A DNA stretch of 63,874 nucleotides, the filler included, from Lenisia limosa (Eukaryota > Protista > Breviatea): assembly GCA_001655205.1 (NCBI GenBank). It is 7 parts of 7 records of this genome, joined end to end, with 100 filler letters (N's around TTAATTAATTAA, not from the genome) between each part and the next. Parts side by side here need not be neighbours in the genome. Positions count along the whole stretch, not along the records: positions 1 to 21,269 come from LPNZ01010013.1; 6 more parts are not named here. One strand, given 5' to 3'. Shown here one piece after another: positions 88 to 21,269 of this stretch (position 1 is the first letter of the stretch; each line of letters starts with the position of its first letter). Position numbers and translations under genes: made by a program. Below the pieces are notes generated by a model that was given only the letters and a program-made list of their open reading frames with translations, ran no database searches and had not been told where the DNA came from.

Positions 88-1202
88 CGCCCGAGGTTGT
101 GAAGGGCCTGCCCTACGGTCCCGAGGTGGACTGGTGGGGTGTCGGCTGCCTTCTCTACGAAATGCTCACCGGAATCGTGGGGGGTCTGAGAAGATTTCTT
201 TTCCACATTATTGCTCTCCCTTCTTTTAATTGTTTTGCTTATTGTGACTATTTCAGCCCCCGTTCTACAGTGAAACTTCTGAAAAAGAAACGTTCGACAA
301 CATCCTTAAGTAGGCTTTGAGGAGATCGCCGGTGTACTGTTCTGTTGATTCATTTCTTCCTTTCATGCTTTTCTCACGGTCCTTTTTTCTTTACAATTGT
401 ATGTTTTCTTTCCTTATTGTTTCCACCTCTCACATTGCAGGGGTACTCCCGACTATCCCCCCTATCTGCCTTCTGACGCCCAGTGTCTCATTGAACAGGT
501 GAGGGGACCTAGTAACTTTTTTGTATACGATAGTCTCATCATTCTTCTCTTGTAGGGTATTAGCTTAGTACTGTTATCACTCTTGTAGCTTTTGACTGTG
601 GATGCGTCACAGCGTCTTGGTTCCGGTACAAATGGCGCCAACGCAATCAAGGTTTGCACGTGGTTGTAGAACTGTCAACTTTTTCAAAAAAGAGGAGAGG
701 GATGAACTTGTTCTAACATGAATTGTGCGTTATCTATTTTTTCTTTCTTTTCGCAAGCCTTTTCTTGAACTCATTCTTGCTACTCCTCCACCGTATCCTC
801 CTCTTATTAATGAGTAGTGCTACCTTAATTGATCACACTCACCCCCCCCCCCCNNNNNNNNNNNNNNNNNNNNNNNNNNNNNNNNNNNNNNNNNNNNNNN
901 NNNNNNNNNNNNNNNNNNCGCGAGATTGCGCCACCCCTCGGGTTCAAGCCGAAGCTGGACAGCGAGCTGGATGTTCGGCACTTTGACGCCGAATTCACGT
1001 GTCAGGACCCCCTGGATTCTGATGACGAGGTGCGTGCAGTCCTCGTTGATAGACTGGTGCTTTTTTGACCATCCACCCTTTGCAAACGTGTGATAGTTGT
1101 ACACGACCAAATTGCTTACTTCTTCAGGACCAAGGCAACACCAACTTGGACACTCATTTCGAAGGATTCACTTATGTTGATCGCTCTCTTCTTGATAGCT
1201 AA
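88..1202 (+). CDS. AGC-family Ser/Thr kinase (Akt/SGK/S6K/PKC-like), 3' exons only
   Basis: Spliced exons give APEVVKGLPYGPEVDWWGVGCLLYEMLTG, GTPDYPPYLPSDAQCLIEQ, LLTVDASQRLGSGTNGANAIK, FKPKLDSELDVRHFDAEFT and the hydrophobic motif HFEGFTYVDRS*. The 5' part lies outside the window. Confidence 0.93.
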
Positions 1203-6271: not shown

Positions 6272-9200
6272 AGCGCTAGCCCCCGTGACACGATTTTCTG
6301 CCTTGCAAACAGTTCGGCACTTACGGACCATTATGACAAGTAAGGGGGGGGGGGGGGGNNNNNNNNNNNNNNNNNNNNNNNNNNNNNNNNNNNNNNNNNN
6401 NNNNNNNNNNNNNNNNNNNNNNNNNNNNNNNNNNNNNNNNNNNNNNNNNNTGATCTGATTATTTAGAAAATCCCTTTGATGAGACATCTCTCAGAACCCT
6501 TGAGGTACACTCAGATTTGATTTGGATGAAACAAAAGCCAAAAATATTCCATTGGCTGGCATCATTTCAATAATACTTAGATGCGTTCCTCATGGTATCT
6601 AGGTTAATGGTAGCGAGTACTCTTATTACGACATTAGAGCGCAATGCTCTCACCTTGGTAGGAGATTTGATGTTGCAATGGGGACTGCCTTTTCACTGAT
6701 TTGCAAACAAATTATTAACGAAAGACCGGGTTAACTTCTTATAGACAAACTACCATACTCGATCCGCGTATTACTCGAGGCAGCCATCAGAAAATGTGAC
6801 AAGTCCGAGGGTATAGTATACATCATAGAATAGGTCAACCAACCACAGCAGTTTCCCCAATATCCCTTCAATATCAACCATTCTACATGACAATTCAGCT
6901 TCTCGGTTACTGAAGCGGACGTTGCCACTGTGAAAAACTGGGAACAAACTTCAAAGGTAAGTAACTACACATACTGCGCGCAATACCAAGTTTTTCTAAA
7001 TTTCAGGAAGGGAAGGAAATTGCCTTTTCCCCCTCGAGGGTTATTCTTCAAGATTTCACGTAAGCGTAGCCTATTCCCTTTGACTTTTATTAATCAATAA
7101 AACATAATGCCATTCCTTGACTTTCAACCTGGATACTGGACTTCCCATACTGATAGTGTAGAGGAGTGCCAGCAGTGGTGGACTTAGCGGCCATGCGAGA
7201 TGCCCATAAACGACTGGGTAGGCATATAATAACAAAAGAAATCATCATGCTTCGTCTTGGAGGTAAAACCTGCAACATCAGCAGTAACTCTCATAGGAGG
7301 AGACCCATCCAAAATCACCCCCCAAACCCAAGTGGATTTGGTCATAGATCACAGTGTTCAGGTTGACGTTGCAGGAGTGTATNNNNNNNNNNNNNNNNNN
7401 NNNNNNNNNNNNNNNNNNNNNNNNNNNNNNNNNNNNNNNNNNNNNNNNNNNNNNNNNNNNNNNNNNNNNNNNNNNNACGTCCAGTCGTGTCCTTTATTTC
7501 TGACCTTTATAGTCCCACTGCTGTGGCTGACAATATGAAAAAGGAGTTTGAGAGGAACCACGAGAGATTCGCATTCCTGAAGTGGGGGAGCTCAGCCTTC
7601 GACAATCTCCGCATTATTCCGCCGGGGGGTGGCATTGTGCACCAGGTATGATAGTTGGCGTGCGATACTGCTATGTACTTTGTTATATACACTTTATTGG
7701 GGCTTTGAACACGAGTAACTGCGTTAGTTGTGTGATGCGTTGTTGCTCCCTGTCCCACCTAAACAGTTCTCATGATGAATTTATCAGCTTTACAATTCCA
7801 GGTCAATTTAGAGTACCTTGCCCACGTGGTCATGAAAGGCAAAGACAACCTGGTATATCCTGATAGCCTTGTGGGCACCGACTCGCATACGACAATGATC
7901 AACGGTCTTGGCGTCACGGGATGGGGTGGGAGGGCTTCAGGTTCAGGTTCAATAGGATCCGCCCGGTAATGGTTAACTTACATTGTGTTAAAATTTTATG
8001 TGATATTCAATCCACGGCTTGGGTTGAGATTTTTCGAAATTTTTTAAAACTCAAACAAAATGGACGTTAGACTTTCTACTTTTCGCCTTGTCTTATTCCT
8101 TCAGGTGTAGGAGGTATCGAAGCCGAAGCGGTCATGCTTGGCCAACCGATCAGACTCACTTTACCAGAGGTTGGTCAAAACAACTTCTTTAGAATGAGCA
8201 ACTGATAACATTGATAATAGGGATCAAATCATAGAATATATAATGCACAAATAATATCCGTTCCAGAGTATCAAATCTGACATATCAGGTTGTGGGCTTC
8301 AACTTACACGGTACCCTTCCGCCAACTTCAACCGCCACTGATCTGGTGCTGACTGTCGTCCAGGTGGGGTGTTTGGTTCCCAATTTCTCATACTATATCG
8401 AGGAGTTATCGAACTCACTTTGGACAAATCCACCTCCATCCTTCACAGGGACAGTGCGTTAATGTTTTTAAAGTGACTGTTCTTCAGCTGCTGCGCCAAA
8501 CCGGAGTGGTCGGCAAGTTTATTGAGTTCTACGGCCCGGGCTTATCTGGACTGAGCATTGCCGATCGCGCCACTATCGCGTAAGCTCCAATATGTTTATT
8601 TGCTTGTTGGTAAACATAAAGATCTACAGTAGATACTTAATCATGTCACCAATTTAGCAACATGTGCCCTGAATACGGTGCCACCATGGGCTTCTTTCCT
8701 CCTGATGAGGAGTCCCTGAATTATCTCCGGTGGCTGGGGCTGTGACTACATCACTGGGGGTTGAGACATTTCTTGCCATGTCTATGATTTGGTTTGATCA
8801 AAGGCGAAAATATTATGTATGTTGATCACATCCACTTAACGGAGGCCTATTGACTTGTGACCTGTGTCATCCCTTAGAACCACTGATAGAGGAGACCAAG
8901 CAACGTTGTGTGAGAAGTATCTCAAGGCTCAGGTACGAATACAATTGAGAATAACTGTAACAATATACTATTTAAGCAGGAGTCCAATTAAATTGCGAAA
9001 ACAATGTTTTTTTGGAATTTCGCCGTGGAATATTGCAAGAATATGCACTTTTCTGGGTCAACTCCAAGTGATTGGAAGATATAATATTTTTTCGTTTTCT
9101 AGGTATTAACTTTTCCTGAAATATTGGTCAAATCGTAAAGTTTCTAGTCTAAAATCACCCATAGAAAGTTTCTGGTCTATAATCACCCATAGAAAGTACT

Positions 9201-12200: not shown

Positions 12201-13109
12201 TTTTTATGCATTCTCTAAATGGAGTTGAGGTATTGCTTTAGTGTTCTATTATCGCTTTACACCTCACGAGAATTAACAAATTGACTGGCCTGGGCTTTGT
12301 TTGTTGTTATCAACCCTCGTGTGTTGTCAGCAGCCAACAGAGTTGATTTTGGGCTTTTTGTTTGTTTCATAAATTTTTCCAGTCCCATATAAGGACTAAC
12401 ACCACTCCCCTCACCAGGCAAGGACTACGGAAGTGGGTCGTCACGTGACTGGGCGGCCAAGGGCCCGGCTCTGCAGGGGGTTAGGGCTATTATCGCCGAG
12501 AGCTTCGAGAGAATCCACAGATCGTGGGCTCGATTCCTGGATTGGCGTATTAGATTTACACAGGAGTATCAGTTTTGTAGCAATAAATGAGGGCCAATTC
12601 GTCTAAAATCCAACCAGTATCTCCTTTTCCATTTGATATCACATCGTTGATAATTCTGTCGGACAGCAATCACCCTCGTAGCAACTTGGCAGGCATGGGT
12701 ATTTTGCCCCTTCAGTTCAGCGAAGGAGACTCAGCTGACAGCCTAGGTCTCACCGGCAAGGTATGGCACTGTCTTCCTCGTACTCTATGTGGCTTTTATT
12801 GTTAAGGAGCGATTCACCATTCAACTCCCTGACGAGATTGAGCCAAAAATGCCTGTCGTAATCAAAGTAAGTTGCTGTGTCTCAGTTACATTTTTTTAAA
12901 AAAAAATTCTTAGCCTTTCTAGTCCTTCTAGCCATATGACCTATCTGATACAATAACGCTTCAGACTTCTTCTGGAAAGTCCCTGAGCTGCATTTTACGT
13001 TTCGACACTCTGGCGGAAGTCGAGTATTTCAGAAACCAGGTTTGTGTCTTTCACTTCAATCCTTACCTTCCAGGGAATCCTGAACTATGTCATCCGCTCA
13101 ATGCTCTGA
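6272..13109 (+). CDS. ACO1: Aconitate hydratase, AcnA/IRP1 type, many introns
   Basis: Exons give [71 protein letters not shown] (4Fe-4S Cys), [16 protein letters not shown] and [11 protein letters not shown] (stop 13107-13109). The 5' end is not fully resolved. Confidence 0.97.
12284..12381 (+). repeat. Dispersed intronic repeat family R1 (representative copy)
   Basis: ACTGGCCTGGGCTTTGTTTG...TCAACCCTCGTGTGTTG...CAACAGAGTTGATTTTGGGC...GTTTCATAAATTTTCCA. Related copies at 16056-16158(-), 20320-20346(-), 21811-21866, 24023-24116, 24268-24390, 27769-27840, 28141-28268, 28389-28454(-), 28970-29010, 58830-58950(-) and 63597-63650(-). Confidence 0.85.
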
Positions 13110-13215
13110 ACCAGATACTGCACACCTTTGTCTTTATACCTCTAGAAATGAACCCTTATTGTGCAGCAAACTGGTGCAAGAAAAGAACACCATACATAAA
13201 TACAAAGCTAAGAAA

Positions 13216-16200
13216 TTACCACTTGTCACTCCACTCCTCTTTTTGTCCAGACTGGCCAAACTCCGATTCGTCCGCTTCTTCTTTTTCAGCCTGGGAGGGG
13301 GGCAAAATGATGGCTAAATGAAGAAAACTTCAATTAGGGGGTTATGATAAGAGAATGCACCAGCTTCGATGAGCGAAAGAGGTGGATGAAAGCAACAATC
13401 CATGGAAACTACGCACCTCCTGTAATTTGCCGCTTCTGATAGCCATTGCCTTCTCAATTTGAGAGCCCAATGAGCCCTCCTTATACTGCTGAATCCCTGG
13501 CTTGGCCTTGGGCAGAGCAGAAATCTGGATATGTTAAACCAACTAACAATATTCCGCCCTTCGTTTCAATAGTGTTTGTACCTTCTTGAGGGAGTTTCTA
13601 ATGTTTTGAATGTCAAGCGCAGCTTGCTGGAGCTTGGATTTCTGTTCGATCTTCGGCATCTCAATTTGCTCTGAAAGAGATGAAAATAGCGTCATTGAGC
13701 AGGGTGATGTATCTCAAAAAAACTGGAATGGTAGGGATGGCCCTCAATGGGTTCAAAAATGGTGCTACTTGTAACAGGGAAAGTAAATGTCCGGCATTAT
13801 CCCAAGACCTCACCAGAAGAGGCTTTTAGTGCAACATCAGCCAAGGACTTGAAGGTGATCTTAGGGATCTTGACTACAGGTGGAGAGGGTGAGGAGAGCG
13901 GACAAAAAAAATGGGGAATAGATGACGGGAATATTTTGGGAATGGGGATACTAAAAAAAGGAAGAAAATTCAACATCTAACAAAAGACCCCGAGAAGCAG
14001 GCCCACTTTTTGATGCTGATGTTGTGACAAGCTTCGGTTGGATGGACAGAGCTGGATAATCAGAGGGGCTGAGTACAAAATGAATATTTCATGTGGGGAG
14101 TAATTCGAGTTAACTTTTGGATACTCAAAAAGTTAACAACTCATATAAAATAACAGTATGTACTGATTAACTAGATCCTTGAAGAAAGATGTTTCGAGTC
14201 TACATGGTTATAAATAATCAAATTTCAAGATAAAGGATTAAAACTGACTGTCAAAGAACTTATAATGACTATTCCGACCAATGTAAAACTATGTAAAGAA
14301 ATGTGAGCTCATCAGGTATCATACAATCGAACCACGTAACCCTTAATTTTTTAAAAATGTGAAAAACTGCAATTCTGTTCCAAACAAAATATAAAAGCGG
14401 CAATACCAATCCATATCTCAGTCAATATTTAGAACCACAAGTGTGCTTTCTAAGAGCATCAAAAAAGGNNNNNNNNNNNNNNNNNNNNNNNNNNNNNNNN
14501 NNNNNNNNNNNNNNNNNNNNNNNNNNNNNNNNNNNNNNNNNNNNNNNNNNNNNNNNNNNNNNNNNNNNNNNNNNNNNNNNNNNNNNNNNNNNNNNNNNNN
14601 NNNNNNNNNNNNNNNNNNNNNNNNNNNNNNNNNNNNNNNNNNGGTGGTGATTGGCGTGGCCGCGACCGGGGCAATCTGGGCGACAGTGGGTAGGAGGGAC
14701 ACCATCGGTACCGAAAGTTCAGGTTGCACCTGAGGGATGAGAATTCTGGCATCGATAGGGGATTCAACCCTCCAGGATGAATGACACTGCAATCAGCAAA
14801 CAGCCCCCCCCCCCCNNNNNNNNNNNNNNNNNNNNNNNNNNNNNNNNNNNNNNNNNNNNNNNNNNNNNNNNNNNNNNNNNNNNNNNNNNNNNNNNNNNNN
14901 NNNNNNNNNNNNNNNNNNNNNNNNNNNNNGGGAGTTGGGTGGGTTGAGCAGCCACGGCCGCGGACATGAGAACGGTACTGTTGGCAGTGGCTACGGTGGC
15001 GGCGAGAGCGGCAGATGATGCACGCACGCAGACGGCTCGGTTACTGAACTGAACTGTTCCGTCGGCTGTGGAGATGTAAATGCCGGTTCCAGGTTAGTTT
15101 GGGGTAGTTGGATACTGTTTTTATTATTGTGAAAAGTAACAATTTATCTCAGAGTGATGATAACTAGTTCAAGCCGCACGTACCAGCGATAACTGGAGTC
15201 AACTTGGTGCCCTCTATTGCCTTTGAGGCTGCTGTAACAGCCAGGGTTGTCAACGCGGTCATCTGAGGGGTCAAAGAGGACTGGTGGAGTCACAATGGTT
15301 AGTTTGTTCAAAAACTAACCTTTTCATCTTCATCTTGCTCCACAACAATAGGGGCAGCAATAGGAGCTGTTCGAGTAAGTCTACAGAAGGGACTGAGGAA
15401 TGCCCATTGGAACTCAAATCAACAACTTGTGCAGAAAAATAAGACAAATGTGCGAGTGGATATTGATACAGTACATATACATACAGTGTATACTCAACAA
15501 AGGATTGCGCATACATGACCTTTTAATCAATAGTAACGTACCGGGAGGAGGAGGCAAGTCTTCACCTGTCTGGGCATTGATTGCTTTGACAGCAACAGGC
15601 TCAGCAAACACCACATCACCTGAGGAATGAGGCGGAAATTAATCTGAAAATAATGATAATAGAACTGTTCAACACAAGATGACAAACTCACCACTGGGCA
15701 GTTTGTAGGCCTGAGACGCGGCGTTAAGTACCGACGGAACAATCGGAAGCTCCGAGCCATCTGAAGCCACCGCCTTGGTTGCCGTGGCCGTGGCAAGGGT
15801 GTACTCTCCCTCCGAGGTCATTACCACTTCTAAACTGATAAAACTAGTCACATTGGTAAATCGCTTGGTAAGAAGGATCTCTTCAGTGGCCAGGCATATT
15901 CCATTCCATCAGATAAGCCACCAACTAGCAGGAGGGGCGACATAGACGCTTTGGACCGGCATCGGCGGCGGGAGGGCGACAAAGGACCCATCTGGTGCGG
16001 TGACCTTCATCGGAACAGCAGTGGCACTCAGCAGATCTCCGTCGGCTCCTGTGGAGGGGGGGGGGTAAAATTGGAAAATTTATGAAACAAAAAAAAGCTC
16101 AAAATCAACTCTGTTGGCTGACAACACACAACAAAACAAACAAAGCCCAGAGCAGTCGGGGGAGGGTATGTGGGGTAATAGATTGTCCTTGTATAAAGTG

Positions 16201-19200
16201 GTGTTACCTGCTAATTTGTACTTGACATCTTAATCGCAGAAGACGTAATAATGTTCCCAATACATATTAATTATTGTCGCGAAAGTGCAGGGATCACCAA
16301 AACCACCTATTGTGCGACCCCCTCCCCACCTCTGAAGACCTGTTGCGGTGGCAGGGGGCACACCGCTTGACCCTGAGCTGTGGTCACCGCTGTGGCCGCG
16401 ACCGGGGGTGCGAACTCCAAAGACGCATCGGCAGTCTGAGCTCTCACTGGCACGGCCTCCGCAAAGGTTAGTGACCCGTCACTCAGACGCACCGGCACGG
16501 CGTTCTCGGGCAGCGAGTCCGAGCATTCGTTGCAGGCCACTGCAGGCAGTGCTATTTCAACGTCGTCAACGGTTACGGCCTTCATTGGGATTGCAGACGC
16601 AAATCCGACCTGAGAAACTCAGTAAGTCGTGTTCTGAGTGCAGGAGTGGTCAACACTAGCATTTATGTCTCCCAAGATTGAACAATACATTCACCCACTA
16701 ACCTCTCCCTCAGAATCTCTGAAAACGGACATGGGTTTGGGGGCTAAAAGAGGAGCAGAAATGCCAGACACAGTTGGCATACCTGAAGGTGTTAGAAAAA
16801 GGCACGAATGCAGACCTCATAACTTTTTTCTACTCGAAAAAAAAGCAAAAAAAAAAGACAGGAAAATAGATGATAGATTGTATGGCGTGTTGGTCAAGCA
16901 TGCTTTTTGGGGACTGAGAGAAACATAGTGTTAATGAACAACCAGTATACCCCCCTCACCAATGGGAACAGTCGGAAGGTCCAGTTCTTCGCCGGACCGC
17001 AGCTTTGCCTTGCACTCCACTGCGGTGGCGTAGGTCACTTTGCCGTCCACAGTACGCACCGGGACCGGAAGCTCCTGCGGCGTGCTTGCGGCCGCGGCCA
17101 CAGCCAAGACCTCCATGGGGACCTCGGGAAGCTCGTCGCCGGCACTTCCGACGGCAATGAGGGGGATGGCCTCGGCGACCGTGATGTCGCCGCTTTCGGT
17201 CTTGTAGAAGCCGGGCTCAGCTTTGACAACAGCTGGTATCGCGCCGCATGATGTAGCTAATTTAACAGGGGCGGCTTGGACAATGGGGGGCAAGGCGGTG
17301 CCTTGTTCGTCGACAGCGCTACACGGCACTGCGGTGGCGTACTTGGTGGTTCCGTCGGCTGTTTGGACGGCGACTGGCTGCTGAGAAGCGAAAGACGGCG
17401 GCGGGGGGAGGAGGTCATGCCCACTAGCGTCAACGGCCTTGAGCGGCACGGGAACAGCGTTGAATATGTCTCCGTCGGAACCTCGGAAGAACTGAGCTGC
17501 CGGCGCGGGTTCAACTGCTGACATTACACCCAAAGCCGTTGGCACAACGGGGGCGGCCGAAGCGGTAACGGGCTCTAGAGCCGCATCTGTGCCGTCTTTC
17601 AATACGGCCTTGCAGGGGACAGCCTCGGCAGCATAGGTAATGGTACCGTCGGCAAGGGCAATGGGAATGTTGTGCATGCCGGGGGCGGCCACTGGAGGGG
17701 GTGGCAAGACTGAGCCATCCATGGTCGTTGCTTTAACAGGAACAGAGGAGGCGATGAAAACAGAGTTATCAACATTTCGGAAGGCCATGACGGGGGCCAC
17801 AACCTCCGGACAGGCCAAGATGCCCTGGGAAGATGGAATGAGGACAGGAGCAGGCGGCATAGGGACCTCAAGGCCCGATTCGGTAGTTGCCATAACGGGA
17901 ATGGGGGTGGCGTAGACGATTGAACCGTCGAGAGCCCGGACCGGAGCGGCGAGAGATTGGACTGTGTCGGCCGCAGCAACCTATGAGGTTAGAAGAAGAA
18001 AGACTTGGGAANNNNNNNNNNNNNNNNNNNNNNNNNNNNNNNNNNNNNNNNNNNNNNNNNNNNNNNNNNNNNNNNNNNNNNNNNNNNNNNNNNNNNNNNN
18101 NNNNNNNNNNNNNNNNNNNNNNNNNNNNNNNNNNNNNNNNNNNNNNNNNNNNNNNNNNNNNNNNNNNNNNNNNNNNNNNNNNNNNNNNNNNGAGAAATGT
18201 GCGGAAAGCCTAAGGTGACATCCACATTATCACAGAGTACAGTATATTGAGAGTCCTTACAAAAAACAAACTGCTACATACCTTGGGAGGGGGAGGAAGA
18301 GTCTCACCGGACACGGCAATAACCTTGGTGGCAATCGGAGTGACATAACTGATCGTTCCGTCGGCAAGCTCCATGGGAACAGCCACATCAGCCGCACCCG
18401 CACAGAGGCCTGCAGCGACTGAAGAAGGCGGTGCGGGCAGTGGCGATCCGTTGACAGCCTCGATGCTGTGCGGGACAGCCTCGGCAAAGACGACCTTATC
18501 ATCAAGAGTCACAACAGCCACAGTTCCTTTAGGTGCAGGAGCCGTTGGCATGTCGATGCTGCGCGCCTGGGCCACGCTCTCAGTCGCCACGGTGGCGTAG
18601 AAGATAGCGCCGTCGTCGGCCTTGAAAGGGCGGAGAGAAGCAGCAACTGCGGCGGCGGAGACCACACCAACAGTGTCAACAATGTCGTCGAAGTTCGGCA
18701 GCGGCGGCAGTTCGGACTCATCCAGGGCCACGGGGCGCACGTCGACGGGCTTGGCATACACAACTTCGCCATGGTTGTTCCGAGCCGGAACCAGTTCGGA
18801 TTGGCTTCCGACTGTAGCTTCTGAGGCTTCCAATACGGCCGGCGGCGGGGGTAACGCGCTGCCATCGGCGGCAACAAGAACCGTCGGAACGGCCTGGGTG
18901 AACATGACGTCACCATTTTCCATTCTGAAGGGCCGGGCCGCGGCAAGAGGGGCAGCGGAAGTGACTTGGTCCGGTTCGGGCAACACGGTTCCGTCCAAGG
19001 CTGTGAACTTCAGCGGCACGGCTTCGGCGTAACTAATTTCACCGGTCTCTGCTCTGACCGGCTCGAAATTGGCGTTGTCTTCGATCATTCTTGACACGAC
19101 GACGGGTGGCGGCGGCGGAAGAACTGAGCCGTCTGCAGCCTCGCCCTTGACAGCCACTGCAGCGCCAAAGAGAACGCTTCCGTCGGCCATCTTGTAGGGC

Positions 19201-21269
19201 TTGAAGTCGGCAAGTCGTCTTGACGGCATGCTTGAGTCCACAGCAGCAACCGTGATGGCTGAAGGGGCCTCAGGCAGAACAGTGTCGTCCAATGCCACAA
19301 AGGTCACGCCAACAGCCTCGGCATACTGCAGCGCACCCTCGTTGTCCTGGACCACCTCATACGACAGGCCATTCTGTGTGCCCTCGAGAACAGCAGCGGG
19401 CGGCGGCGGGAGACTGATGCCATGAGTTGTCACGGCCTTAGCGGCTACAGCTGACGCGTAGATCACTGATCCGTCCTCGAGCTTGAAAGGCTTCATGGTG
19501 TTCAGTCTGTCGGCTCCTGACACGCCCGCAACCGCAGCAACAGCAGCCACTGCGGGAGGTGGCGGTAACGCTGTACCGTCGGAAGCTACATACTCCACGT
19601 GGGCGGGGGCGGCGAATGCCACGTCACCATCGGTAGTTCGAACCGGAACAGCCTGGACTTCCGATAAGGCGCTTCCGACAGCCGGCGGCGGCGGCAGAAC
19701 GGTACCATCAGCCGCAGCAACCTGGATGGGTACAGCGGTGGCGTAGATGACGTCACCATTGGTGGTTTGGAAGGGTCTGAGAGTGGAGAGAACGGCCGGG
19801 GCGGCAGTAGCGCCAGTAGCTTGCGACACTTCAGCCAGGGTCGGGAGGTCAGGAAGAGTCTGGCGCGCTGAAAACTCGACAGCAATGGCCTCGGCATAGG
19901 CAATGTCTCCATTTTGCTTCGTGACAGGCTGGAGCTGGTTCAAGGGGGTGTAGAGCGAGTCGTGGACCGTGGAGGGAGGAGGGGGGAGAATAGCGTCATC
20001 GAGAGGAACAATTGCCTTGGCTGGAAGGGGAACAGCGTACACAACGTCCCCATTGAGGAGCTTGAAGGGCCTGAGGGTGGGGACTGTTACTTCGCTGCAC
20101 ATTTCAGGCATTTCAGGCAACTCAGGAAGAACCGTATCATCAAGAGCTGAGAACACCACTGGTACAGGTTCAGCGTATACGATGGAGTTGTCGGCCTTAC
20201 GAACTGCTGTCAGCTGTTCGGACGGGGTCACTACTGAAGCGGCAACAACTTCTGAGGGGGAGAGGGGGAGGGGGGGTAAAACGGAGGAAATTTCGATGGC
20301 GTAAAGGTACTAACCAGTACAATTGGAAATTTATGAAACAAAAAAGTCAGACGTGATGGAACGGCAAAGCGGAATCCGTTATAACTAGTTTGGCAATAAT
20401 AATAGAAATAACATCATCAAAGCACACAATAAGACAAAAATTAAGAGAAAAGGAGACATAACAGCAAAAAGACTCATCGAAGACGCCAAACAACCCAAAC
20501 AAGCATACCCGGGAGAGCAGGTAGGACGGTGCCGTCAGCGGGTGCAGCCGCATCTACTGTGGCCGCGACGGCGTAAATAACGCGACCGTCTTCAGTTTCA
20601 AATGCCTGGGCGTGTTAGTAGTGTTACTAATGTTGAAAAGTTCCATAAATCTGAGGAGGTGGGTATTAGGGATTTAAAAAAAATATGGAACTGAACAAAA
20701 GATACCGAGAAGAAAAATTGAACATACAAATCAAAAACGACGTACTACTGTCTGATATTTGCAAAACTGGTGACGACACACTGCTTGAGAAAAAAAAAAA
20801 TAGCACTACAGCAGCATACCTTGACATCGCCAAGAGTAGCCTCGGGGTTTGCCTTCTGGATGGGCCCGGGAACGGCAAGGGGCGGCGGCGGGGCGGACTT
20901 GCCGTCATTGGTCACGTGCTTGACTGACACAGCCTCGCAGTACGTGATTGAACCGTCGGCAAGACGCACGGGTTCAAGAGCCTGGTTTTGGCCTTCTAAA
21001 AAGGGGGTAAGGTGGTAATGGTATGGAGTAATGCTAAAATCAAACAGATAAAACGTTCAGGGTGACAGAAGCGTTCAGTCCACAGTCATACCAGCAGAAG
21101 GGGGCGGCGGAAGGTCATCACCGTTGTCTTGGACCATTTTGACCTTCATGGGCTCGCCAAACACCGTTTGGCCATCAACGGTCTTGTAAGCAAGGGGCTG
21201 AGGCGCACCGTCCGGCACCAGTTGCAAAACGTACAGTGGAATCGGCTCAGTGGGGGCTGGGGGGGGGGG
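13216..21269 (-). CDS. Giant uncharacterised repeat protein (~30 repeats, many ending LPPPP) with a putative C-terminal WH2-C-A module; 5' end lost at contig linker
   Basis: Long open exons (about 18283-20252 and 16931-17990) plus many short GT-AG exons encode PFxxxDGxxxYAxAVPxxxxxxDGxxLPPPP units. Terminal exons 13582-13670, 13417-13524 and 13216-13290 are in phase and read ...KLQQAALDIQNIRNSLKK/ISALPKAKPGIQQYKEGSLGSQIEKAMAIRSGKLQE/AEKEEADESEFGQSGQKEEWSDKW*. Continuity across masked segments at 14.5-14.9 kb is inferred. Confidence 0.75.

Follow-up and report, generated by a model that had tools for sequence, protein, structure and literature searches.

Of the described activators of the Arp2/3 complex, the bacterial ones, Listeria ActA and Rickettsia RickA, carry proline repeats; in ActA, the Arp2/3-activating region (actin-binding, C and acidic) is N-terminal, and four FPPPP repeats recruit Ena/VASP. 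Formins hold an Arm-like DID, an FH1 polyproline segment and a WH2-like DAD. In the WASP family (WASP/N-WASP, WAVE/SCAR, WASH, WHAMM/JMY, WAWH and WAML), the common layout is a family-specific N terminus, then proline motifs and then a C-terminal module of WH2 (V), central (C) and acidic (A) elements, written VCA or WCA, with a proline-rich region before the VCA as a general feature (PMC3298513). Here, we describe a locus of the breviate protist Lenisia limosa (GenBank assembly GCA_001655205.1) at which a long array of proline-motif repeats is followed by a tail that may be of this kind. The window (by which we mean the whole stretch of DNA that was analyzed) is 63,874 nucleotides long, filler included, and joins seven parts of seven records, positions 1 to 21,269 coming from LPNZ01010013.1. 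Positions 13216-21269 are the 3' part of one spliced, polyadenylated eukaryotic gene on the minus strand, which encodes at least 1,668 amino acids: ~31 repeat units, then a linker of ~200 residues rich in Ala, Val and Thr, and finally, a tail of 84 residues. That the tail would be a divergent WASP-type WCA module, and the protein a WASP-type nucleation-promoting factor (NPF), is a reading to which we give a probability of about 0.5, judging from sequence patterns.

The tail was tested against the definitions of Kollmar et al. 2012 (PMC3298513), in which the WH2 helix of the WASP family has a pair of large hydrophobics, then two residues that are small or polar, then I/L, and the C domain is a helix in which three large hydrophobic residues, spaced by three, come before two or three K/R in a row and a closing large hydrophobic. 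In our protein, the V, C and A elements stand in canonical order at the extreme C terminus, encoded by three short minus-strand exons with canonical splice sites, just where an earlier note on this DNA (made by a model from the sequence alone) had read its three terminal peptides. The first of these exons, 13670-13582, encodes (S)EQIEMPKIEQKSKLQQAALDIQNIRNSLKK and supplies the WH2-like element, KSKLQQAALDIQNIRNSLKK, whose LKKI takes its I from the next exon; the segment reads A-A-L-D-I-Q-NIRNS-LKKI, its last residue being Ile, and it keeps the LKK core and the hydrophobic linker Ile. The second, 13524-13417, encodes the linker between V and C together with the C-like helix (ISALPKAKPGIQQYKEGSLGSQIEKAMAIRSGKLQE). 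From LKKI to the C element there are 17 residues, compared with 16 in human N-WASP (counted from the sequence in PMC6624021). The C element, LGSQIEKAMAIRSGKL, has the triad L-GSQ-I-EKA-M, spaced by three, and a terminal Leu (pattern L-x3-I-x3-M-x2-RS-x2-L), and its Arg-Ser falls at the same offset as the KRS of WASP and N-WASP; AlphaFold2, given this exon alone, predicts a helix over LGSQIEKAMAIRS (residues 19-31), with a predicted local distance difference test score (pLDDT) of 84-91. The third, 13290-13216, encodes the acidic tail, AEKEEADESEFGQSGQKEEWSDKW, and the stop codon. Its last 26 residues hold 10 Asp/Glu against 3 Lys (net -7) and one Phe and end in …EEWSDKW, so that the last residue of the protein is Trp; there are only two Trp in all 1,668 residues, and both fall within the last seven.

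How much of this could be chance? Globally and colinearly aligned with the N-WASP VCA, the tail scores z = 4.0 (a value attained by 1 of 1,000 shuffles), and with that of WASP, z = 3.0; the alignment pairs AALD…LKK with ALLD…LKS, C helix with C helix and EEWSD with DEWED. A composite pattern of relaxed V, C and acidic tail with terminal W was matched by 0 of 300,000 shuffles of the C-terminal 111 residues and by 0 of 1,000,000 random 111-mers, but because that pattern was written post hoc, its chance figure must be read as an upper bound on significance.

Several observations weigh against the NPF assignment, and most of them are also the case for its strongest competitor, which we judge possible but would not bet on: that the protein is a multivalent proline-motif scaffold with no NPF activity, WIP/verprolin- or MIM-like, which would recruit EVH1, profilin, SH3 or WW partners, with a C terminus that is at most a weak WH2-like binder of actin monomers plus a charged tail and with a WCA likeness arising from short degenerate motifs. 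First, no sequence search recognizes a WH2 or a VCA: Pfam WH2, the profile check proposed in the earlier note, gave no match at E <= 10; phmmer against the PDB returned no chain at E <= 10, although the PDB holds WASP/WAVE VCA complexes; and BLASTP against the human WASP and N-WASP VCA returned nothing at E <= 100. Second, the WH2 helix has Ala-Ala (…QQAALDIQ…) at the positions of the two conserved large hydrophobics, and the strict WASP-family WH2 pattern fails, leaving only a relaxed one that matches. Third, the C element has a single Arg (R-S-G-K) in place of the K/R doublet, and its ungapped similarity to the C elements of WASP and N-WASP is unexceptional, placing it, taken alone, only in the top ~1% of 16-mers from the same protein. 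Beyond these, the acidic tail is only weakly acidic (the net -7 includes three Lys), the last LPPPP lies ~200 residues away from the WH2-like element, and no orthologue in which the tail might be conserved was found in the collections searched.

A mere scaffold, however, would not be expected to end in this way, with three independent elements in the right order and at the right spacing, at the very C terminus and downstream of polyproline sites, with its only two Trp at that end, with a helix predicted exactly over the C pattern and with a colinear z of 3 to 4. Weighing these, we regard the tail as a credible but divergent WCA-like tail, going by its sequence, and not as a recognized one. Of the marks of a W-C-A tail, the order, the spacing, the hydrophobic triad of C and the acidic end with Trp are present, and the strict WH2 pattern and the K/R doublet are not. 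Of the proposed "candidate new class of Arp2/3 activator," the word candidate is fair, and the words new class say more than the data show.

Three smaller observations on the tail belong here. In the minus-strand exon 13814-13873, 28 residues N-terminal to the WH2-like helix, the peptide FKSLADVALKAS looks like a second, more degenerate helix-plus-LK element, at a spacing equal to that of the two WH2 domains of N-WASP (counted, PMC6624021), which may be coincidence. The tail's only Pfam match, DUF1151 (E = 0.04), is below threshold and was disregarded, and a hydrophobic-moment scan added little.

In the body of the protein, a hidden Markov model built from its own units finds ~31 of them, each of ~41 residues, separated by linkers of 0-18 residues and spanning ~1,400 residues, with the consensus P-[VF]-[RK]-x-x-DG-x-Φ-x-[YF]-A-x-A-V-P-x-K-A-x-x-x-DG-x-x-LPPPP. 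Two types alternate along the array, RPFKxxDGxxxYAxAVxxKAxxxDGxxLPPPP and EPVRxxxGxxxYAEAVxxxFxALDxTxLPExP. In the model, there are 11 LPPPP, 1 APPPP and 8 LPxxP motifs, and no Pfam family was found in the repeat exons, so that the earlier description of an unrecognized repeat studded with LPPPP was sound. Pairwise identity between units is 26-46% and no tandem repeat can be detected at the level of the DNA, from which it follows that the array is old and its units have diverged. The 11 exact LPPPP conform to the EVH1 class I core motif, [F/L]PPPP (PMC4165403), as far as sequence goes. There is thus a proline-rich region upstream of the VCA-like tail, as in the WASP family, but its motifs are, atypically, embedded in repeat units. 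Given a segment of two units, with the nine remaining pairs supplied in a 10-row internal alignment, AlphaFold2 returned a model of low confidence (pLDDT 63.7, predicted TM score [pTM] 0.27), in which each unit opens with a β-hairpin and the units do not pack against one another. At that low confidence, the body may be a flexible chain of small hairpins, with a polyproline site displayed on each unit.

It is the composition of this body, 17% Ala, 12% Val and 12% Pro with many Thr and Ser across the 1,668-residue model, that brings to mind a quite different protein, secreted or at the cell surface, hydroxyproline rich and extensin-like, in which xPPPP motifs serve glycosylation or cross-linking and the C-terminal motifs are coincidental. 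The repetition of the xPPPP motifs and the poor predicted order of the repeat region (pLDDT 0.43 in the ESM Atlas model of the repeat exon, besides the pTM just given) would suit such a protein. Typical of extensins, however, is SPPPP, and the motif here is LPPPP; no signal peptide or transmembrane segment is seen in the visible part; the same-strand exons directly upstream look like cytosolic Arm/HEAT; and the motif set of the tail is of a cytoskeletal type. We consider the extensin-like protein improbable.

The gene itself was traced with two public runs from one study, X1 (a poly(A) RNA library) and X2 (library type unrecorded, introns included). A 1,356-nucleotide RNA contig from X1, aligned to 13050-19000, falls into eleven minus-strand pieces with ten junctions, of which eight are GT-AG introns visible in the window; every visible skipped stretch begins with CT and ends with AC on the plus strand, which is GT..AG on the minus strand. 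The pieces of its 5' part lie at 15614-15542, 15366-15320, 15262-15184, 15065-14930 and 14731-14643 and those of its 3' part at 14051-14007, 13873-13814, 13670-13582, 13524-13416 and 13289-13070. The contig is spliced across introns 13290-13416, 13525-13581, 13671-13813 and 13874-14006, and 15066-15183, 15263-15319 and 15367-15541 are likewise absent from it. It starts within a repeat exon, in the stretch 15614-15542 encoding VVFAEPVAVKAINAQTGEDLPPPP, a canonical repeat unit; reads as a single open frame up to the stop at 13216; and continues into a 3' untranslated region (UTR) that reaches at least 13070. A second RNA contig, of low depth, covers 17198-17502, inside another repeat exon.

The exons at 13.2-13.9 kilobases (kb) are thus spliced to the repeat exons, as had been predicted from the sequence. 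Conversely, the idea that the WCA exons are a separate short gene, linked to the repeats by an assembly artefact, deserves hardly any credence: the same RNA contig does also merge into a convergent aconitase gene, but that merge joins antisense overlapping 3' ends, whereas the link to the repeats consists of ten junctions on one strand and an uninterrupted frame from a repeat unit to the stop, which exclude a separate gene, the very case that the earlier note had named as its refutation. The note had also said that the six-frame open reading frame (ORF) track misses a WCA split over short exons; only the two long exons had been called as proteins.

For the last ten introns, the protein model uses junctions proven by RNA; elsewhere, it uses GT-AG junctions that agree in phase and leave the repeat units whole, those upstream of 15619 being inferred and one of them requiring a weak GTTGTT donor. 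The remaining exons, all on the minus strand, are as follows, from the 5' side. The repeat exon at 21092-21256 (…LVPDGAPQPLAYKTVDGQTVFGEPMKVKMVQDNGDDLPPPPSA) was placed by frame, motif and predicted GT-AG junctions, and the gene extends 5' of it, past the window edge; those at 20820-20995 (…EPVRLADGSITYCEAVSVKHVTNDGKSAPPPP…) and 20509-20605 (AFETEDGRVIYAVAATVDAAAPADGTVLPALP) have predicted junctions as well. The large exon at 18282-20251 holds 14 units and 7 LPPPP and ends at the donor AAG/gtatgt (18282/18281). It sits in an open frame of 699 codons, 20309-18213, within which the ORF from the first start codon, 20231-18210, encodes 673 residues (P0001). A second large exon, 16943-17980 (P0002), holds 7-8 units and is the one partly covered by RNA. 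The repeat exon at 16330-16609, whose predicted junctions include the weak GTTGTT donor of the exon preceding it, is followed by two further predicted repeat exons, 15926-16048 (…GADGDLLSATAVPMKVTAPDGSFVALPPPMP…) and 15692-15829 (…SEGEYTLATATATKAVASDGSELPIVP…), and by the last canonical repeat exon, 15542-15619 (GDVVFAEPVAVKAINAQTGEDLPPPP), within which the RNA contig begins (contig positions 1-73 are 15614-15542). Four linker exons in the region 14643-15366 (15366-15320; 15262-15184; 15065-14930 plus 67 nucleotides; and 14729-14643 plus 37 nucleotides) rest on the RNA contig and a second assembly; they encode the Ala/Val/Thr-rich region, with one degenerate repeat unit. Two short exons from the RNA contig, 14051-14007 and 13873-13814 (…LSIQPKLVTTSASKIKIPKITFKSLADVALKASS), complete the linker side of the gene in the region 13814-14051.

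The 67 and 37 nucleotides are hidden in gaps of the window's assembly (14816-14929 and 14469-14642), and these gaps can be closed. The 673-residue exon product is also recorded on a 49-kb contig of ENA ERZ3820729 (NODE_108, locus L001) that contains no N. Between L001 and the window, there are 0 mismatches and two small indels, placed in intronic homopolymer runs, and L001 is therefore from the same sample and not an independent individual, yet as a second assembly, it fills the gaps. The gap at 14816-14929 is truly 75 nucleotides long, with 67 coding nucleotides (…PTAAAVVAPVSPIPELDSAKAAK) and a GT donor followed by a G run; that at 14469-14642 is truly 117 nucleotides long, with 37 coding nucleotides (TSSTVTMEKQVA) and again, a GT donor and a G run; and that at 18012-18191, also of a true 117 nucleotides (L001 12041-12157), is intronic and contains a run of 15 G. 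At the two coding gaps, the RNA contig has 65(+2) and 37 letters, the 37 being identical to L001, and the frame is continuous across all three. The complete model runs from L001 8749 to the stop; all but its first 37 residues are encoded in the window (~1,630).

All three assembly gaps coincide with intronic poly-G runs. Several introns have GT followed by 12-15 G at the start or 11-12 C just before the AG at the end (window 14469-14642, 14816-14929 and 18012-18191; L001 15308-15330, 15526-15540, 12085-12100, 8960-8973 and 14100-14121). Such a composition is unusual for this genome, and in two introns, the G-rich 5' and C-rich 3' ends could pair with each other. Another intronic stretch, A-rich and of low complexity (16055-16160), draws ~3,500 X2 contigs with a summed depth of ~103,000; this pile-up is a low-complexity mapping artefact or a very short dispersed repeat and not a feature of the gene.

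What lies at the other end of the protein? L001 reaches 8.9 kb past the window edge at 21269, and between ~540 and ~8500, on the strand of the gene, it holds ~30 exon-sized GC-rich segments that look Arm/HEAT-like (e.g., …LRQALLALANITQSPDAQRLVAAFPEGIAYLLTLAIG…), with a possible start, MDNADNV…, near L001 540, after an AT-rich stretch. Pfam scans of 20 of the upstream segments, with exons scanned singly, found no WH1, WHD, WAHD, GBD or IMD, the best match being Arm at a subthreshold E = 0.04. Taken with the scan of the window, this upholds the statement that known N-terminal modules of the WASP family are not found, for a gene whose 5' end is undefined; of the N-terminal domains of the named subfamilies (WH1, SHD/WHD, WAHD1, WHAMM/JMY, IMD and GBD), the Pfam scans show none.

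A phase-matched chain of good splice sites leads from the final Arm-like exon to the first of the repeat exons; it passes through three short GC-rich exons (near L001 7914-7982, 8164-8243 and 8406-8495) and has its end at 8749. Alternatively, there are two genes, an Arm gene that stops at L001 8049 and a new gene that starts from an ATG at 8197, and two genes are plausible here because the genome is compact (107 nucleotides between convergent stops and a 34-nucleotide intron, both described below). From the sequence, we would give roughly even odds to one gene and to two. In an intron upstream of the repeats (L001 7712-7795), there is a direct tandem duplication of ~41 nucleotides (ctcgctcaggcac.aat.actatgtattggctgtttttgtt).

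The searches brought up no relative. With phmmer, the 673-residue repeat exon product found only itself and the neighboring exon among 1.84 billion protein representatives, and both exon products are singleton clusters. Scans of metagenome contigs with P0002 and P0001 found no related locus, and in the ESM Atlas, look-alikes of the repeat exon reached no more than 0.53, well under the level of noise. When the last 125 residues were used in a word-index search, a single protein matched, P0003, on the 5-kb contig L002 (ENA ERZ3820729 NODE_3506). This is a 231-nucleotide secondary copy (L002 3817-4047) of the WH2-like exon and flanking intron, 88% identical to window 13582-13770, which takes in ~100 nucleotides of intron upstream and ~25 downstream. 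Its acceptor has changed from AG to AA, there is a 3-nucleotide (Ala) insertion in the exon and a 16-nucleotide insertion in the intron, and none of the gene's other exons lies on L002; the copy has the look of a dead fragment left by duplication. Because its intron is as well conserved as its exon, it tells nothing of selection, and it is no test of conservation. An X2 contig with GCA put in behind 13618 was considered as an allele and rejected, as it derives from this secondary copy.

Two neighbors complete the picture of the locus. The C-terminal end of an aconitase/IRP-like gene lies at 12690-13108 on the plus strand and converges on the repeat gene; 107 nucleotides separate the two stop codons, and the 3'UTRs overlap in antisense. 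In the ESM Atlas, the aconitase ORF matched only clusters that bear bacterial labels. The last intron of the aconitase gene (~13040-13073) is only 34 nucleotides long and is spliced out in the RNA contig. That contig, the one from the repeat gene, continues past 13070 into the aconitase gene, which shows that X1 contigs can merge overlapping antisense 3' ends. Farther away, at 99-320 and 829-1068 (plus strand), are pieces of exons that encode a protein kinase (…GLPYGPEVDWWGVGCLLYEMLTG…), probably an AGC-type one.

If the tail is what we think it may be, how might such a protein work? The LKKI element and the helix before it would bind an actin monomer, and the helix L-x3-I-x3-M-x2-RS-x2-L, together with the acidic end (F…EEW…W), would attach to the Arp2/3 complex and so promote branched nucleation. 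The dozen LPPPP sites would turn the body into an extended multivalent platform on which Ena/VASP, or possibly profilin-actin, gathers beside the nucleating end. In Drosophila Abi and WAVE1, experiments have established LPPPP as an EVH1 ligand of lower affinity, one that links Ena/VASP with the activation of Arp2/3 (PMC4165403). Should the Arm-like region belong to the protein, its solenoid could (and this is speculation) autoinhibit the amphipathic helices of the tail in the manner of a formin DID-DAD pair. Put together, these steps would describe a WASP-family-like NPF of a new type, from a eukaryotic lineage hardly sampled so far, of 1,700 to ~3,000 residues, possibly with an autoinhibitory Arm/HEAT-like N terminus, with ~31 hairpin units as an Ena/VASP or profilin-actin rail and with a terminal WCA that fires Arp2/3—in effect, a eukaryotic counterpart of ActA. 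We offer the assembled picture tentatively, at somewhat less than even odds.

Were it true, the short list of NPFs would gain one more subfamily, with a body unlike any of the others, built of dozens of structured units that each end in an EVH1-type ligand. The finding would be relevant to the coupling of filament branching and elongation on a single scaffold and to the question of how much divergence a working WH2 helix tolerates, and it would mean that exon-split WCA tails can escape annotation based on uninterrupted ORFs. Were the tail inactive, what we have would still be a well-documented orphan repeat protein, of local interest only.

How does the locus compare, then, with the systems with which we began? 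With the WASP family, it shares the overall layout, the hydrophobic triad of the C helix and the offset of its Arg-Ser, the acidic tail with Phe and terminal Trp, and a V-C spacing near that of N-WASP. It differs in that no WH1, SHD/WHD, WAHD, GBD or IMD is found, in a WH2 helix that lacks the two large hydrophobics, in the missing K/R doublet, in a tail that is far less acidic and in having no detectable sequence homology to the family; and where the family has low-complexity polyproline, here ~31 structured units of ~41 residues extend over ~1,400 residues. By descent, the protein would fall outside all the named WASP subfamilies. If the Arm-like exons belong to the gene, the order becomes formin-like, an Arm-type N terminus, polyproline sites and a C-terminal amphipathic WH2-like helix, and autoinhibition would be possible; there is, unlike in formins, no FH2 domain, and the acidic Trp tail is a feature of the Arp2/3 type. 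The EVH1 ligands of Drosophila Abi and WAVE1 (PMC4165403) have the identical LPPPP core and occur in proteins that cooperate with Arp2/3 activation, but they are one or two sites in disordered regions, whereas here a putative binding site closes many of the ~41-residue units. ActA differs in placing its module at the other end of the protein, the one here being C-terminal, with 11-20 sites and in a spliced eukaryotic gene, and the two are not homologous. A single polypeptide that pairs a region of the activating type with tandem [F/L]PPPP repeats is also the plan of ActA, and in function, our protein would resemble most closely Listeria ActA, or else the WAVE complex working with Ena/VASP.

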